58,874 nucleotides of DNA from Pelomyxa schiedti (GCA_020536535.1 JAHLWZ010000239.1:1-58874), one strand, 5' to 3'. Shown: positions 14,573 to 23,200, counted from the stretch's first letter. Notes: generated from the letters alone by a model not told the origin. Program-made: numbers and translations.

Positions 14573-16056
14573 ATGGGTAAGCAGCAACACCACACGCATG
14601 TTCGTAGACCCAGAGAGAAGCTACCACCTCAACATCAACAGCAACGACGAGGAAATTGTGGGTCCTGGTTGCTAGTTGCAGCCGTAACGGTCATTGTTGC
14701 TTTTGGAGTAGCGTGGATCGTGCGGCGTCACAGAGATTTCGAAGAAGCCCGAAGGGCACAACAGATAGAGTTGGAAGAAGCACAAAAAGATGCTCTGCGG
14801 ATCGTTGACTCCAAATTGCAATTGCTCCATGACAGTTTGTTGCGGCAGGTAATTGTTTTGCCAATTATGTTACACCCTTAACTTGGGTTTTCTTTCCCCA
14901 CAGTATTCGGAGGACGTCGTTCGCAAGTTTGAAGAGAACGAGCGATGGAGGGCCGCAGAATTCGTTCGTTTGTACCGCAAAGCAACTGATGAAGATTTGG
15001 CGAGTGGGGGAATTTGGGAGGATTACCAGCTTCCCTTTGATACTTACAGTACTTGAAATTTCCCCCTGTTTCTCCTACTGACTTATAACAAAAAAGAGAG
15101 AAGCTGTTTGGGGCAACACAACCGTGCTTCACAGGAAAATATAAGCAGCTTTGTGTTAGGGCTAAAAGAGTGGAACCACTTGACTTCCACTGCACGAGAA
15201 AAGGCGTTTGAATTGATCCTTGTAAATATGACCCATCACTCCAACGCTATTGAGGGTAGGGCATTGGTCTCTTTTCATTTCAAAGATAATGTAACCACTT
15301 GTTTAGGAAACAAACTTTCACTCAGTGACACTATGCGAGTTATTTCTGGTCTACAACCACTGGAGCATGGTGAGCTCTTTTACCTGGTTGTGGCTTTCAT
15401 ATTTCAAATAAACAGTTGACGAAAAGGATGTGGTTGAAACAACAAACCACGTTGAGGTTGTCAAGTGGCTTCTTGGTTGTGAGGACAAGCAAATTACAGC
15501 ATCTCTCGTTCAGGATATTCATTACATTCTGTTACGTGGTCTGAATTTATACAATGGTTTGGTTCACAAGCTAAATTGTAGAAGACACTCATGACTTCAA
15601 AGGTGAATACCGGCCCCACCCAGTTGGAGTTGGTACAGCTCAAGTGCTGTTCTGAATAAAGCAGTTCAAACGGTGAACGCCTTGATCTCTGCAACCCTCA
15701 GCAAAGCGGGGAAGCTTAGTGAGTCTCAGTATGTGGAAGAGGCTCTTTCTGCAGCATGCCATGCACACTACCTATTGGTATATTACCCTCCAACTAACCT
15801 TTCATTCACCAAATTTCGCCAGGTGCACATCCACCCGTTCGCTGATGGAAACGGCCGCATTGCCCGTGTGGTTGACAACCTGCTTCTTCGTATTTTTGGG
15901 TTCCCACCTGTGGCCATATTCCCCATTGAAAACCGCATTGGTTACATCAGTGCTATGAACAGTGCCATGGAGACACACTACCACGCTCCCTTGTGCCGGC
16001 TTCATGCAGAGGTGGCTTGCACAACCCTCCATTCTTTGTTAAGCCAAATACAATAA
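14573..16056 (+). CDS. Fic/Doc-domain AMPylase with N-terminal transmembrane helix (FICD/HYPE-like, class II)
   Basis: Fic motif HPFADGNGRIAR; inhibitory motif SNAIEG|N; hydrophobic segment WLLVAAVTVIVAFGVAWIV followed by a coiled coil. Confidence 0.9.
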
Positions 16057-16304: not shown

Positions 16305-19300
16305 ATGTCGTTTTCCTTCAAGATCGTTTTTGATGGGGCCGCTGGCGTGGGTAAGGCATGGAAAGAATGATCTTTTGTTTTCACTCCACAAAACTCTCTT
16401 TCCACCCCATAATAACGGCTTTTCGTGTGTTGAATAGTCGTGTTTGCAACACTATTTTGTCTTTGGAGAACCTTTGGTTGACCCACAAGCTAGAGTCGGG
16501 GCTTGCTTTCAAGTCAAAAAGGCCATGACTCCAATGGGTATTAATCACTCTATCTGTGAAATATGGAGAGTTACTTTTCTTTGTGTCTTGGCAGTTTTTA
16601 TTTATCGTGTGCTTGGGTTTGGGTTTTTTCTTGTTTGTTCATTTCCTTGTAGGTGAATTCAAGTTTGAGATATGGGGTAGGTATCAACCTTTTCCCCTTT
16701 ATCTGCTCATATCCAACCAGATATCCAGTCAAGGGACCGCACTTGGAGACCTCCTTCTCCAATGATGTATCGACGAGCCGCGATTATAGTTCAGATTTTC
16801 GCACTAAATGATCCTGAGACTCTGGAACGTAGTGCTGAGGTAACATCTCTCCCACAGATTTCTGAGAGTGTAGTTTTACCTATTTACCAACTTTAGATCT
16901 TCTCTGAGTCGTATGGACGGTGTGACATTTGGTCTCAAACTATTTTGGTAGGGACAAAGCTTGATCTTATTGAAAAAAACGGTCCAACTCCCAAGGACAA
17001 ACGTGTTCCATATGACAAAGCCGTGCAAGTACTATTTTTTTGTTGTTCCAGCAAACTACTTTAGTTTACTACAGTCAGATGGCTAAAAATATGGGAGCAA
17101 TTGGTTATGTTGAACTAAGCAGCACCACTGGGAAGAATCACGAATGTTTGTTCAATCTTATCGTGGAGGCTGCAAGTATTATTCTTCCGGATCTACCTGC
17201 ATCCTCCCGCGCACCACCTGCTGCACCCACTCCACCCCCAAAGCCAGGTTTCTCTATTATATGTCTGATTTTGCACCAACCGTGCTGTAAATTTGGCAGG
17301 CTTCTTCGCATCTCTTTTCTCCTGGGCTTCTTCTCCAAAACCAATTCCAGAGGCGACCCCTCCTTCAAATACAAGTAGTGTGACGACAATTAGCACTATT
17401 CCCAGTACAAGCTTAGTCACACCGATTACTATCAAACCTATAATTAAGAGTCCATCCTGGCAAGTGTTATTGGGGCAGGAGTCTGGACCAGCAGCACATC
17501 CAAGGTCTCAAACATAAACATGCCATGCCTCTAACTAAATTACTTTTCTTTACATCTAGCCATGGGCATGTTTCCGCAGAGTTCAGAGGCAGTCTATACA
17601 TTTTTGGGGGAGCAGGGGACACTGATTTTTGTGAAACAATGAGATTTGATCTTAAATCAAAAAAATGGCTATCACCACTGCCGTCTCCCACTATTGGGAA
17701 ATTTGCAGCAATGGCGAAGGATATGTCTCATATATACCTGTTTGGTGGCGATATCGGCGGAATTCCAACCAACAATCTCTTCCACTTCAATTTTGAGACA
17801 CGGAAATGGGAAAAACTCTACCCAACAGATGAGAGTCCTGATGCAAACGCCCCAAGCCCCCGCTATGGAGCCTCAATTATCAAGTACTCTTTCTGCATTA
17901 TTTTTGATCTAATCTTTACTTCTAGGTATTGTGACACCTTAATAATTTTTGGAGGCAGTTCTGGCGATGCCTATTTTATGGATGTTAAGCGTTAGTTACC
18001 TTTTTGTAGTTGGCACCAGCTCACTCTAGGTCAGGGTTTAATCTAAATACCAAAAAATGGGAACCTGTTCTCTTAGCAGAAGGCTCGCCTGTCCCTCCTC
18101 CTCGTTGTCACCATACAGCATTTAGAATAAGGTGACTTAACTGCTATCGCTGAATACACTAACCTTTAGGGAGTAATCAAGAGGCCATTTTCTATGTATT
18201 TGGGGGTTTGTCTGAAGCCAGAGTGAAGCTTTCTGACCTGTGGGAGTTGTGCCCCACATCTCCCCCGATATGGAGGCAACACACTATGACAGGGGATATC
18301 CCTACCCCTCAACGTGGGCATGTGGGCTGCGTTATTGACAATTCTCTTCTCATGTTTGGTTCCTCCAATGACAATCCACATTGTGAAATATCACAGTAAG
18401 TCTAAGTGGCCACTCTCTTCTTGAAAAACTCCTTTATTTTCAAGGCTTAATTTCGATTCCCGAAATTGGACCAGAATATCTCCAACTGGTCAAACACCAA
18501 GTGCAAGAGAGGTTTGATCACCATTTATTATACCAGTGACATACTAACACTCCTAGTTTCATTCTGTAGCTTCTTCCTGTGACAACCAAGTTATTGTCTT
18601 CGGTGGTTTGTTACGACAAGTTACTTCGGATCTTCTTGGAGATGCCTTCGTATTGAACATTCCTACAATGCAGTCACTCTCCCTTCTGGCCTTACCGTTG
18701 TCTCCATACTGCTGGATGCATATTTGCTCATTTTTGCCACCAGAATCGATTGCTTTCTTGGGCATGGTATCTGTTTCATGTGTTCTAGCACTCCCTTTCT
18801 CACAAAAGAAAATAAATATTAGTGCTGCAAAGGGTTGTATATATTATGCAATGATAACGAGGTATGGCGGCCACTGTTACCACCCGAAGAACAAATAGGG
18901 ACCAATCTAAAGCAAAAATGTTTGCGTGTCCCTCCAACCTCTCTTACAATGCAAAAGATGTTGAGTACCATGCCCGAAAACCTCTGTGGCGGAACCCTCA
19001 GCCGAAAGTTGTAGATGAAGAATTTCCTAAATCCCACATTAGGTACTATTCCAGCCCGGGGTGTTTTCTCGGTGATGGGATTGTCCATTTGGCAAACTGC
19101 ACAACCAAGTGAGCCTCACTACCTGCTTTTATTTGCTGTTTTGTAATTCTATCTGTTTCTTGGTTGGCAACTAACCTCTTCTTATCTGAAGGTATGTGTC
19201 TGATATAGTGCCAGGGGACTTTGTACTCACAGAATCATTGAATGCAAGAGAAGTAGCAAGAGTTCTCACAAGGGATGTCAACAAGGACTATAATTTGGTC

Positions 19301-19677
19301 TTTCTAAATGGCCTGGGGCTCACAACCGGACATCCAGTGCTTGTTAATGGCAAGTGGATGCACCCAAAGGATATCACGTCACCAACTAGGCTGTTTGTAA
19401 CGAAACTGTACGATTTTGAACTTGTTGGGGGCACAAAGGTACAGACTCAAATTCTAGGTTTCGCAAAACTAATTAAAACTAACAAAGGTGCAAGACCACA
19501 GTGTGATTATCAATGGATTGGTTGTATGCACCTTGGGCAAAGACTGTGGAATGGAACTGAATGAAAGATTCCCTGATTTGAACAACAAGTTCCTGGCTTT
19601 CTTTCCTTTTAATGCTGATTTTGTTACAAAGGTATGGCACTGGGTATTGGAATACTTTTAAGTACATGAAGGCGTAG
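16305..19677 (+). CDS. Multidomain protein: Ras/Rho-like GTPase + Kelch repeats + F-box + Vint-like Hint domain
   Basis: KIVFDGAAGVGK|S, FEIW|D, LVGTKLDL, YVELSS; about five Kelch blades (LYIFGG, IYLFGG, LIIFGG, FYVFGG, VIVFGG); F-box LLALPLSPYCWMHICSFLPPESIAFLGM|CCKGLYILCNDNEVW; Hint GCFLGDGIVHLANCTTK|YVSDIVPGDFV...LTTGHPV...LYDFEL...HSVIINGLVVCTLG. All exons join in frame. Confidence 0.82.
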
Positions 19678-20286
19678 AGAGCCTCAGCACCCTAAAACAA
19701 TTCCAAAATAATGGAGTGATGGCCCATGATTCTTTTCTTGTCGATGGTTCCAAGCGGAGTTACGAGGGCGTTGTTTTGCATTCCGCTCTAACGAATAGAA
19801 TTAGATCGAGAGGCAAGTTATTTTCGAAGTTCCGAGAACCACCAATTAAAAGCGCGCGACTTTTCTCGCGCGGTGGTGCGGTGTTTCGTGGTGATCAACT
19901 TGTGGATTCCGGCGCATTAGCTTCGCGGCCATCTAAAGTTCTATTTCTATCCGTACCACTAACAGCATCCACGCTTCCCTTTTGTGTAGCGCTTTTTGGC
20001 AAGAAAAAGTATTCCTTTCATGAAGGTGGATACACAGCCGTGTCTCTGGCTATCTTCTTAGAGTCATTCCAAGCACAAGTTAAACAGACACGGTTGTGGA
20101 ACCACCACCAAGTGAACGAGGCACCTCAACGCTGCTTTCTGCCCATTGAACCTGCCTGTAACTAAATTGTGGGGCACAGTTTCCTTTCCCCTGCTGTACG
20201 TGCCTTGTTTAGTTGTAGGTAGGTACTGTTTGTTTATAAACATATTGTTTGTTTGTGTAGGGGTTTATGTTTGGTTGTGGGTGGTG

Positions 20287-23200
20287 CTACACATCGTCCT
20301 GAACTTCCTCGGGCACAACAAGATCTGCTTCCTCAGGTTCCCCTTCGCCATTGTTCTGTGGGTTATCTTGTATCTCTTCTTCAACATCACCAGTGTTGTT
20401 GGAAAAGCCTTGGGGTGGAGTGTGTCCAAGTGCCGCGTAAACTTGCTTCTGTTTTTACATTAGAAAGGGTGCTCAATTGGCAGGGTCTGAGAATTAGGGA
20501 TTGAATAGAGAGGGGTTCACTCACAACTAGTGCTGGGTCGACAAAGGATTCGACTGGGATGTTCCGCTTCCGCATCTGTTCAAAGTAATTGAAAGCTTGC
20601 TGAAAGTCGCCGGCTCGTGCGAGTTGCTGAATAAGAGTTGAATAAACATCCCCGGTTTGAAGAATGTTCTACCAAACGAGTTAGTGGAATGCAGAAGGAA
20701 TTGGTGTTTTGTCATTTAATTGAATTACCTCCACTTGTTGTGAGGGCAACTCCAGAATTTGCTTGAGCAAGGCCATGCTTTGAGCAGAATTATCTGCGCT
20801 ATCAGCCTCGGCAAGGCTTCGTGCTCTGAGAAATTGATCCAGAATATTCAGCTGTTGTTGGAGCTCTTGGTGCAGTGTAACTTTGTCAGGTGATGATGAC
20901 TTAGAAAGACAGCTTTGAGCCTCGATGAGTGCTTTTCTTGCCTAATTGTCCATATTACTAACAATGATAGTTCAGTTCTTCCCGTCATACTTTGGAATAG
21001 TCGCTCCAGTCATCAATTTCTGACCTTGCACAGGACTGGAAATATCTTGCTAATGATTCCCATGCTTGCGCCTGGTTTTGTGTTTTGTTCCATTTTTTTT
21101 GAACTCAGGAGTGACATACTTTTCGGTAGAACTGAATGATATTCTTTACAATCTTCGGCTCGTTTCTCTGTGGAAGAGTCTGCAGATAATTGGCAGCAAG
21201 CACATAAACAAGTGGCTTCTGAGATATAGCTGCGTTTTGGAGAAGGAGAATGAGTGGTATGTTTAGTCCGTGTCTTGCCACACACAAGCATAAAGAATGA
21301 TTTTATCAATATCTCCAGATTTAATAAGTACTTTGATTGCCTTTTTGAGATCTCCAGCCTTAATAAATCACTGAGAAATGGCACAGCGGGTTTTTTTACT
21401 CAACCTGGCTGTACTTTCTGCAAGCGAGATGATATGCGCGCTGTTGCTCAAAACAGGAAGCTATATCACGCAACACTGCAACTTTCTTTTCAGGTTTCTC
21501 TGCCGCCGGAGGTGTCATGCGCTCTCCTTGCTCCTCTGTTAGTGAAACGTGATACTTTTTACAAATTCGGAGTGCCTGAATGTGAAATTAATTCTCAAAG
21601 GGTGGTTAACTCCAAAAAGACTGGTTTACCTCAGAGACTTGACCTGCTGCACAGAATAGCTGAACTGCTTTTGCATACTGCTCTTTCTCTAAAAATAGTT
21701 GTGCACACTTTAAAGCTATTGATGGATCCGCCTGTTCACCCAGTGAGTCAGCTGTACTTTGTATAACATATAGTTAGTCATCTTGAAGTACAAAGGCGCC
21801 TGTACGAACCAATTTCTGCCAGCGGTTCAAATAACTGACACTGGAAGCACAAGGTGATTGCTTTGCTAAGATTTCCTCCTTTGTGGTACAGAAGAACAGC
21901 CTATCAAGAACACAATCAGATTTGGTGATGAGCCAGTAAAAGGATAAGCTGACTTTGTCAATAGCGCCCTTTGATTCCAAGTGCTGTGCTGCAGCTATCT
22001 TTTGAGATGAGGTGCCTTGCAGTGCAATGCTAAAAACGTCAGCATCAAGATCTTGATCAATAGCAAGTCGAAGTGCATGATTGACATTTTTGGACTGGAT
22101 GAAGAAGTGGAGAGCTTCTCGTATCTGGCACGGTTAAATGAAAGAATGCACCCTCCAAGTTTACCGATTCTTCAGATTCAGTGTCACTTTCGTAGTGGCA
22201 TGCCAGGACATAGGCCGCAGCAAGGTCACCACTTTCCTCTACAATTTGCTTGGCCTATTCCGAGTCAAATAAATACTCAGATTAAGAATGGCTATGAGAA
22301 AACCTGAGAAAGTTTGTTTTGCAAACAGTAAATTCGCACAATATATTCATAATCCTTCGCCTTCTCATAGTACATGAGGGCCTCATCAAGTTCACCATTA
22401 CTTTCTGCAAATCGGGCTTTCCAAACATGGAGTTTCTTTTAAGAAAAAAAAAAAAAATTAGAACACTTCAATGTGTCCTCGCAGCAACCAGGTCTTTTGT
22501 GTTATCAATATAAGCATTGAGAGCTGGAATGTGACCAGCTTCATGAAGCATTCGAGGTATTTCAAATCTTTTTATTTTTTCTTCAATTTCTTCAAAAGGA
22601 AAATTAAAATACCTATGGGTCTCTGATTTCTCATATTCTTCCATTGCACGGTCATATTGTCCCATCGATTCTAGGAATTTGGCATAGGCATAGTGCGTAC
22701 TTTTTAAATGTATCCTATCATGACTTTCAGCAATGGATATGGCTCGATCCCACATCCCACAAGCCTGAATTAGAGTTAGTTGTATGCTTTAGTTAAGGGC
22801 TTGGTGACCTGAAGCAACTTATTTAATAAATCGTAGTGCCCACCTTTGGTATATAGTTGAATTGCATCTTCAATCATTCCTTTGCAAATGTTATGAAAAG
22901 GCTTGGATTTCAATCTGTAATACCAAGCTGTATAGCGACAGCGGCGAGCTGAGCTTCCTGGGGTAAGTCTCTTGATTCACGCAGTGTACTAGCAGCTCTG
23001 GCATGTGCCATATTTCCTATGCACACAGATAATGTATCTATCATATCCACACGTTTGGTTTTGATAATCATCTGAACAGTGTAAAGGGAAGTTTTTTCTG
23101 ATGGGGAGGGACCTGAGCCATGTTTGCCCAAACTTTTGGATTCTGTACAACCTTCACAGCCTATAAAAATATTAATTAATCCAAACAAAAACGTATTTAG

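Follow-up and report, generated by a model that had tools for sequence, protein, structure and literature searches.

The locus and its transcript

We analysed a stretch of 58,874 nucleotides from the anaerobic amoeba Pelomyxa schiedti (GCA_020536535.1, JAHLWZ010000239.1:1-58874), hereafter called the window. Between positions 16305 and 19677 it carries a gene whose predicted product combines a degenerate small G domain, a Kelch beta-propeller, an F-box and a C-terminal Hint domain of the Vint type. The features are as follows, with the evidence for each in brackets.

16305..19677, + strand: whole gene, 18 exons, 808 amino acids (open frame; RNA contigs; paralog introns)
16305..17180, + strand: degenerate small G domain, aa 1-176, of which the first two thirds resemble Rab5 (Pfam Ras, PDB matches, motifs, paralog model)
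16356..16437, + strand: first intron, GC-AG, immediately 3' of the P-loop Lys codon (of the donor/acceptor pairs tried, this one alone preserves GKS; GC donor the same in both closest paralogs)
17181..17454, + strand: Pro/Ser/Thr-rich disordered linker, aa 177-250 (pLDDT <50 in the paralog model; 43-46% identity to paralogs)
17455..18661, + strand: Kelch beta-propeller of about six blades, LZTR1/KLHDC/FBXO42 type, aa 251-560 (Pfam by exon and on P0068; Foldseek)
18695..18873, + strand: F-box, aa 572-612, split by the intron 18767-18822, with LS replacing the usual LP (PF00646, family profile, model, dN/dS)
18874..19061, + strand: spacer between F-box and Hint, aa 613-662, with the motif WxNPxP and then a variable disordered stretch to Gly662 (alignment; pLDDT <50; contains a 38-nt intron)
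19062..19535, + strand: Vint-type Hint core, aa 663-776, with Cys663, T722-x-x-H725 and Thr775 (Vint profile, fold, conservation, dN/dS)
19536..19674, + strand: helical tail, aa 777-808, with the signature GKDCG..P..YGxGYW, a candidate adduct-recognition region (conservation, high pLDDT, dN/dS)

A first-pass annotation, made by manual splicing of the sequence, had proposed one continuous frame leading from the GTPase via Kelch blades and F-box into the Hint domain. This is borne out by the 17-intron model, which yields a single open frame of 808 amino acids from the ATG at 16305 to the stop at 19677 (frame check), and by matching domain profiles. The joined model was used for the frame check, the coordinates and dN/dS, and domain searches of the window were run exon by exon. 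Whole-protein scans and folds were performed on the paralog P0001 and on P0068, the NCBI model of the locus, which equals the 808-aa model from aa 60 on and has identical exons from 16723 onward.

Splicing of 12 of the 17 introns is seen in RNA contigs assembled from three single-cell RNA runs; this evidence consists of contigs, not reads, and the three runs represent one sample from one study. The 38-nt intron at 18920-18957 is spliced in all three runs. One spliced contig of 1,695 nt, reaching from 17332 to about 19520, joins linker, Kelch, F-box and Hint, and a second contig spans 16788-17028 and ends exactly at the next donor. No joint was found in the RNA contigs for five 5' introns (16356-16437 with its GC donor, 16538-16652, 16677-16720, 17029-17078 and 17248-17299), and hence the link of GTPase to Kelch is not shown by RNA. 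It is supported by homology, since the 17 introns recur in both closest paralogs (P0001 and P0069) with identical positions and phases, including the donor AAG|GCATG. The single transcript that had been proposed is thus seen in RNA from the Kelch domain through the F-box and the 38-nt intron into the Hint domain, while its GTPase-Kelch joint lies outside RNA cover.

The RNA-contig introns and the conservation of 17 intron positions in two paralogs rule out an artefact of manual splicing. A transcript that terminates near 19014, at the stop of the unspliced frame, was rejected as well, given that all three runs splice the 38-nt intron and that no retaining contig is among those listed. A separate Kelch-F-box-Hint transcript starting at 17332 was considered, but this start is probably a truncated cDNA: template-switch remnants are found at 17332 and also at 16788, both starts are mid-exon, and the first in-frame ATG after 17332 would cut into Kelch blade 1.

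Two details of splicing may be recorded here. The GC-AG intron is kept in three paralogs at one site, directly 3' of the P-loop lysine codon. At 18132-18173 the RNA takes the acceptor GGGAG rather than a TTTAG that lies four bases further upstream and whose use would disrupt the frame.

Upstream on the same strand (14598-16056, +) lies a gene with a Fic domain and an intact HPFxDGNGRxxR motif near 15830-15865. The NCBI model P0068 misses the GC-AG first intron and joins this gene at 16723, which would give a Fic-GTPase-Kelch-F-box-Hint fusion. We judge this joint a probable annotation error, because exons 1-3, conserved in both paralogs, are left out, because the Fic frame runs into a stop of its own near 16056, and because the paralogs lack Fic (no Fic motif within 2.5 kb upstream of the two closest ones). 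A Fic gene adjoining a small-GTPase-like gene is suggestive in itself; the paralogs have no such neighbour. At 15652, inside the Fic gene, a contig of run X4 has 28 bases more than the window, due to either an assembly error or an allele, and this would change the Fic gene model; the type of run X4 is not on record, and it covers the whole stretch evenly, like DNA. On the other side, at 20218-20600 (minus strand), a neighbouring gene is expressed and spliced, with an intron at 20449-20524 (RNA contigs).

The G domain

Pfam Ras matches the two closest paralogs with 68 and 82 bits, and P0068 with 35 bits on the part of the domain that it holds. The secondary structure of the domain is present in the full-length paralog model. 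Motif G1 (GxxxxGK[ST], here GAAGVGKS, which hinges on the GC-AG intron conserved in the paralogs) and motif G4 ([NT]KxD, here TKLD) are present. The switch-I (G2) threonine is lost, with PQARVG in place of STIG in P0069 and TTIG in Rab5a, and so is the glycine of the G3 motif DxxG, with DIQS in place of DPAG in P0069 and DTAG in Rab5a. P0001 likewise lacks both residues and P0069 keeps both. In most of the distant paralogs the P-loop or the G3 motif is broken, and G motifs are eroded across the family. With a dN/dS of 0.33-0.41 (two pairwise paralog comparisons), selection on the G domain is the loosest among the folded domains.

These data speak against the "GTPase-gated" adaptor of the first-pass annotation. 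With the two residues lost here and the distant copies eroded, a cycling GTP switch is unlikely for this copy, and binding of a nucleotide is possible. Most likely, the G domain is a non-cycling interaction module or an autoinhibitory module. One might speculate that it could serve as an intramolecular lid or decoy for the propeller, as propellers of the LZTR1 type bind GDP-RAS (PDB titles).

As to its origin, the best PDB matches of the P0069 G domain are Rab5, and the G domain of the distant paralog P0015 matches Rac. A Rab5-like domain in the three closest copies and a Rac-like one in a distant copy, on the same Kelch-F-box-Vint body, may reflect a GTPase swap or a mosaic.

Kelch propeller and F-box

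Kelch repeats are matched by Pfam on single exons and strongly in P0068. The top propeller matches in Foldseek are LZTR1, ESP (plant specifier proteins), KLHDC10/3 and FBXO42, with scores that are nearly tied, and the dN/dS of the domain is 0.2 (two pairwise paralog comparisons). Within blades 5-6 (about 18300-18640), the loop motifs PTPQRG..GC, NxNPxCE and REF and one arginine are invariant or nearly so among paralogs that are about 33% identical. Such near-invariance at this level of identity suggests one ligand common to all propellers of the family.

The F-box is borderline in this gene (PF00646 on P0068, 20.8 bits against a cut-off of 20.5). Its assignment is upheld by the paralogs, which score 25-43 bits on F-box-like, and by the family profile, which matches the solved F-boxes of KDM2B, FBXW7 and SKP2. 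The model displays four helices, and dN/dS is 0.07-0.12. In place of the LP proline of P0001 and most paralogs, this copy has LS; the role of this proline in Cul1 binding is disputed (PMC3098594). Genes for Skp1 and cullin were found in the Pelomyxa schiedti genome.

The Vint-type Hint domain and its tail

The profile Vint (PF14623) scores 69 bits on P0068 against a cut-off of 27, and 40.5 bits on one exon. Cys1 is located at 19062, TTGH at 19322-19333, YD at 19409-19414 and HSV..CT at 19497-19532, and the tail extends to 19674. Hence Cys1 (C663), the block-B TxxH (T722, H725) and the absence of an intein terminal Asn are as first described, and the presumed membership in the Hint/Vint class holds by profile and by fold. 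Every one of the 54 aligned homologs that span these sites has Cys1 and the block-B Thr and His. The block-F YD was also seen correctly, but it is not a conserved feature, as the Asp position is Asn in 44 of the 54 homologs. A simple count in the homolog alignment found no conserved acidic residue near the position of Hedgehog D46.

The best match of the family profile is the Tetrahymena Vint structure 8R2C (E 6.6e-33). The same structure is the best match of the F-box-Hint model (pLDDT 84; Z 17.3, rmsd 2.7 over 139 residues; Foldseek, VIA), ahead of BIL2, inteins and Hedgehog. With a crystal structure at hand, Vint is better known than the first-pass annotation implied. In the full-length paralog model, G domain, disordered linker, propeller, F-box and Hint appear with no confident packing (pTM 0.48).

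Hint core (dN/dS 0.08-0.09) and tail (aa 777-800, 0.08-0.11) are among the most constrained parts of the protein in two pairwise paralog comparisons. The tail is conserved across F-box-linked Vints, differs from the tail of VWA-Vints, and aligns along 8R2C past the Hint core; beyond these 32 amino acids there is nothing on the C-terminal side of the Hint. The residue before Cys1 varies (G, E, A, S, P, T, I) in a region that is disordered in the model, and is Gly in the three closest copies.

Thr775 (model residue 207) falls at the position of the intein terminal Asn and of Hedgehog 400 / C143 (structural alignment ranges), and 47 of 53 homologs have T, S or C at this site. Where an intein would have (His)-Asn followed by a +1 Cys/Ser/Thr, the sequence reads C774-T775-L776. 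Protein splicing is therefore excluded: Thr stands in place of the terminal Asn, and the next residue is Leu, which is no +1 nucleophile.

Family and distribution

The protein is not the one-off it had been taken for. The Pelomyxa schiedti genome has 47 Vint matches and 9 Vwaint matches, the latter all on other contigs, and the Kelch-F-box-Vint paralogs number at least 13. A G-like N-terminus is present in 12 of these (independently detected by Pfam Ras in 8); the paralog counts do not include 16 further Vint loci of the genome. In the tree, the Hints of the Kelch-F-box-Vint proteins form one branch (99/95) outside the VWA-Vint branch (98/94). F-box-Vint proteins with other N-termini occur here and in other protists. 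WWE-F-box-Vint proteins of Pelomyxa and Mastigella eilhardi carry the same Hint tail, with weak F-box scores and a clear motif. An F-box-Vint of Trimastix marina, which shares this tail, has an F-box of 26 bits, above the cut-off, in a transcriptome sequence for which contamination is possible, and its Hint is also outside the VWA-Vint branch. The same Hint and tail are also retained by F-box-Vint proteins that lack a GTPase match, and canonical VWA-Vint proteins carry a U-box in 5 of the 7 scanned. P0077, considered as a Hint-less relative that could serve as CAAX control, was discarded as it carries a truncated Hint.

Searches limited in length and word found the full GTPase-Kelch-F-box-Vint architecture in Pelomyxa only (with the N-terminal 625 aa as query), and the Trimastix Hint as query found only itself; equally limited searches of Atlas returned nothing by features and no F-box-Vint cluster by shape. 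The view that the architecture is undescribed agrees with the literature searched, in which few subscription journals are covered and no paper on F-box-Vint was found. The GTPase-Kelch-F-box-Vint gene is thus real, spliced and apparently undescribed.

Another set of proteins (P0009, P0012, P0022, P0025, P0036 and P0075 of Pelomyxa, P0017 of Mastigella) displays the same Vint tail behind a different conserved upstream region, which has an LCGxHxRxG motif followed by a helical domain that ends in Lys before Cys1, with no Pfam match. The VWA-Vint-type loci of the genome (L001-L008) are long intron-free frames (up to about 760 aa), as opposed to the intron-rich F-box-Vint genes.

Comparison with known systems

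In RhoBTB and Rab40, as in the Pelomyxa protein, a cullin adaptor motif is fused to a small G domain of atypical kind. Their adaptor parts are BTB/Cul3 or SOCS/Cul5, and any anchoring is by prenylation, whereas the Pelomyxa protein has F-box/Skp1 together with Kelch and Vint and no CAAX. The propeller is of the same class (Pfam, Foldseek) as those of the Kelch cullin receptors LZTR1, KLHDC2/3/10 and FBXO42, none of which has a Hint or a fused G domain. At about 20% identity and with nearly tied scores, the ligand cannot be assigned from this likeness; a small GTPase is plausible by analogy, as LZTR1 has been solved bound to GDP-RAS. In FBXO42 the F-box precedes the propeller, whereas in the Pelomyxa protein it follows.

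Vint proteins have been described as VWA-Vwaint-Vint, some with a U-box (Burglin 2008, PMC2362128). The present protein shares with them the Hint subtype PF14623, the best fold match (Z 17.3), the C-terminal position, Cys1 and TxxH, the lack of a splicing Asn and of any signal peptide seen, and a ubiquitin-ligase module in the same protein. It differs in that P0068 has no VWA or Vwaint, with F-box, Kelch and G domain upstream instead, and in its shorter and distinct tail (GKDCG..YGxGYW as compared to GH..HxYFG..DL in VWA-Vint). Hedgehog/Hog proteins likewise have a C-terminal Hint behind Gly|Cys, no splicing, a conserved helical tail and a nucleophilic residue at the C143 position; unlike these, the Pelomyxa protein has Thr at that position, no similarity to SRR, no secretion signal and a G domain as N-terminus. 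The Hedgehog-related profile comparison by PF01079 (Hint) gave no match in P0068 and only matches below the cut-off in the paralogs and genome-wide. In Tetrahymena BUBL/BIL2 (6Y75, 6TMM), a Hint fold (Z 12.9) also stands beside parts of the ubiquitin system, and BIL2 performs ATP-independent ligation to protein lysines. A terminal Asn and flanking ubiquitin-like domains set BIL2 apart; the Pelomyxa protein has neither.

Proposed mechanism and alternatives

We propose that the gene product may be the precursor of a Skp1-binding substrate receptor (Kelch plus F-box) with its own C-terminal single-turnover ligase. By analogy to Hint chemistry, Cys663 would attack the G662-C663 bond and form a thioester, which may be passed on to Thr775, at the place of the branch-forming Hedgehog C143. 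More tentatively, a nucleophile selected by the conserved tail would then resolve the thioester and free the 146-aa Hint, and the adaptor would keep an adduct bound covalently to its C-terminus, at the end of a flexible tether some 50 residues long. A small molecule, a lipid-like anchor and a protein amine are candidates for this adduct, which would determine the place where the SCF acts. We assign a probability of roughly 0.5 to this reading, namely that the precursor cuts at G662|C663 and ligates a nucleophile onto the new C-terminus of the adaptor.

The conserved T/S/C at position 775 suggests a relay as in Hedgehog, where C143 forms a branched thioester (PMC12054796). For ligation to proteins by a Hint domain, Tetrahymena BIL2 is a precedent (PMC8616854). 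In favour of ligation we count the invariant Cys1/Thr/His, strong purifying selection, the conservation of the tail, the Thr775 position, the BIL2 precedent, the pairing of Vint with U-box and the presence of Skp1/cullin genes; counted against it are the block-F Asp that is mostly Asn, the lack of a D46-like acid, the borderline F-box with no LP proline, and packing that is not predicted. A self-made sterol is unlikely as the adduct, since an exon-wise search of the genome, a weak negative, found no squalene/oxidosqualene (sterol/hopanoid) cyclase domain.

A less probable, though serious, competitor is a triggered hydrolytic release, in which the Hint serves as a sensor or as a cap to be removed, a tail ligand, a redox change or a metal licenses the cut, and water resolves the thioester to leave no adduct; loss of the Hint would activate, relocate or destabilise the F-box adaptor. 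This would need Cys1/Thr/His alone, all of which are invariant, and the study of 8R2C reportedly proposed that the Vint tail regulates cleavage upon ligand binding. The three closest copies would moreover end in Gly, and the propeller resembles the C-degron readers KLHDC2/3/10. However, the new C-terminal residue is not conserved across the paralogs, and as the residue before Cys1 varies freely, a bare new C-terminus is unlikely as a shared signal. Hydrolysis would also leave the conserved Thr at the branch-point position unexplained, and a spacer of some 50 residues, partly disordered, separates the Hint from the F-box, with no contact predicted between the two. With only a 32-aa tail behind the Hint, the cut would free no second functional domain. 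That nothing functional follows the Hint, that the new terminus is unconserved and that the tail is as constrained as the core leads us to favour ligation over hydrolysis. We consider it improbable that the Vint does not cut in vivo and instead lets the intact adaptor bind a ligand or a protein, given a catalytic trio that is invariant in 54 divergent homologs and a Vint that is always C-terminal behind a flexible spacer in the family.

Similarly low is the likelihood we give to the original version, in which the adaptor is under the control of a functional GTP/GDP switch and is anchored by a lipid that the Hint attaches in place of a CAAX prenyl group. RhoBTB and Rab40 are precedents for joining a GTPase to a cullin adaptor, P-loop and G4 are intact, P0069 keeps STIG and DPAG, and none of 19 family proteins ends in a CAAX motif, be it as precursor or as predicted cleavage product. 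On the other hand, the switch-I Thr and the G3 Gly are missing from this copy and P0001, and most distant paralogs are broken in P-loop or G3. Genes for prenyltransferases are present in the Pelomyxa schiedti genome, and F-box-Vint proteins that have no GTPase keep the same Hint and tail, which argues against a Hint that evolved as an anchor for a GTPase.

Implications

Known since 2008, Vint domains occur widely among protists and fungi, and our literature search found no paper that names their product or purpose. In Pelomyxa and Mastigella, and in one case in Trimastix, a Vint whose catalytic residues and distinct tail are under strong selection has been recruited onto several kinds of F-box proteins. 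Together with the U-box that canonical Vints often carry, this recruitment suggests that Vint chemistry serves ubiquitin ligases as a general accessory. As a bolder and rather doubtful extension, this Vint subfamily, so far mainly of anaerobic protists, may be a built-in ATP-independent ligase that joins SCF receptors to a small molecule or a protein via a Thr-branched intermediate.

The compact F-box-Hint unit (about 240 aa) makes cutting and attachment directly testable. A new adduct, if true, would represent a rare natural Hint-driven ligation besides Hedgehog cholesterolysis and BIL2, and may provide a tool for protein labelling. Thr-branched ligation of an SCF receptor, if true, would be a new post-translational way to anchor or commit ubiquitin ligases.
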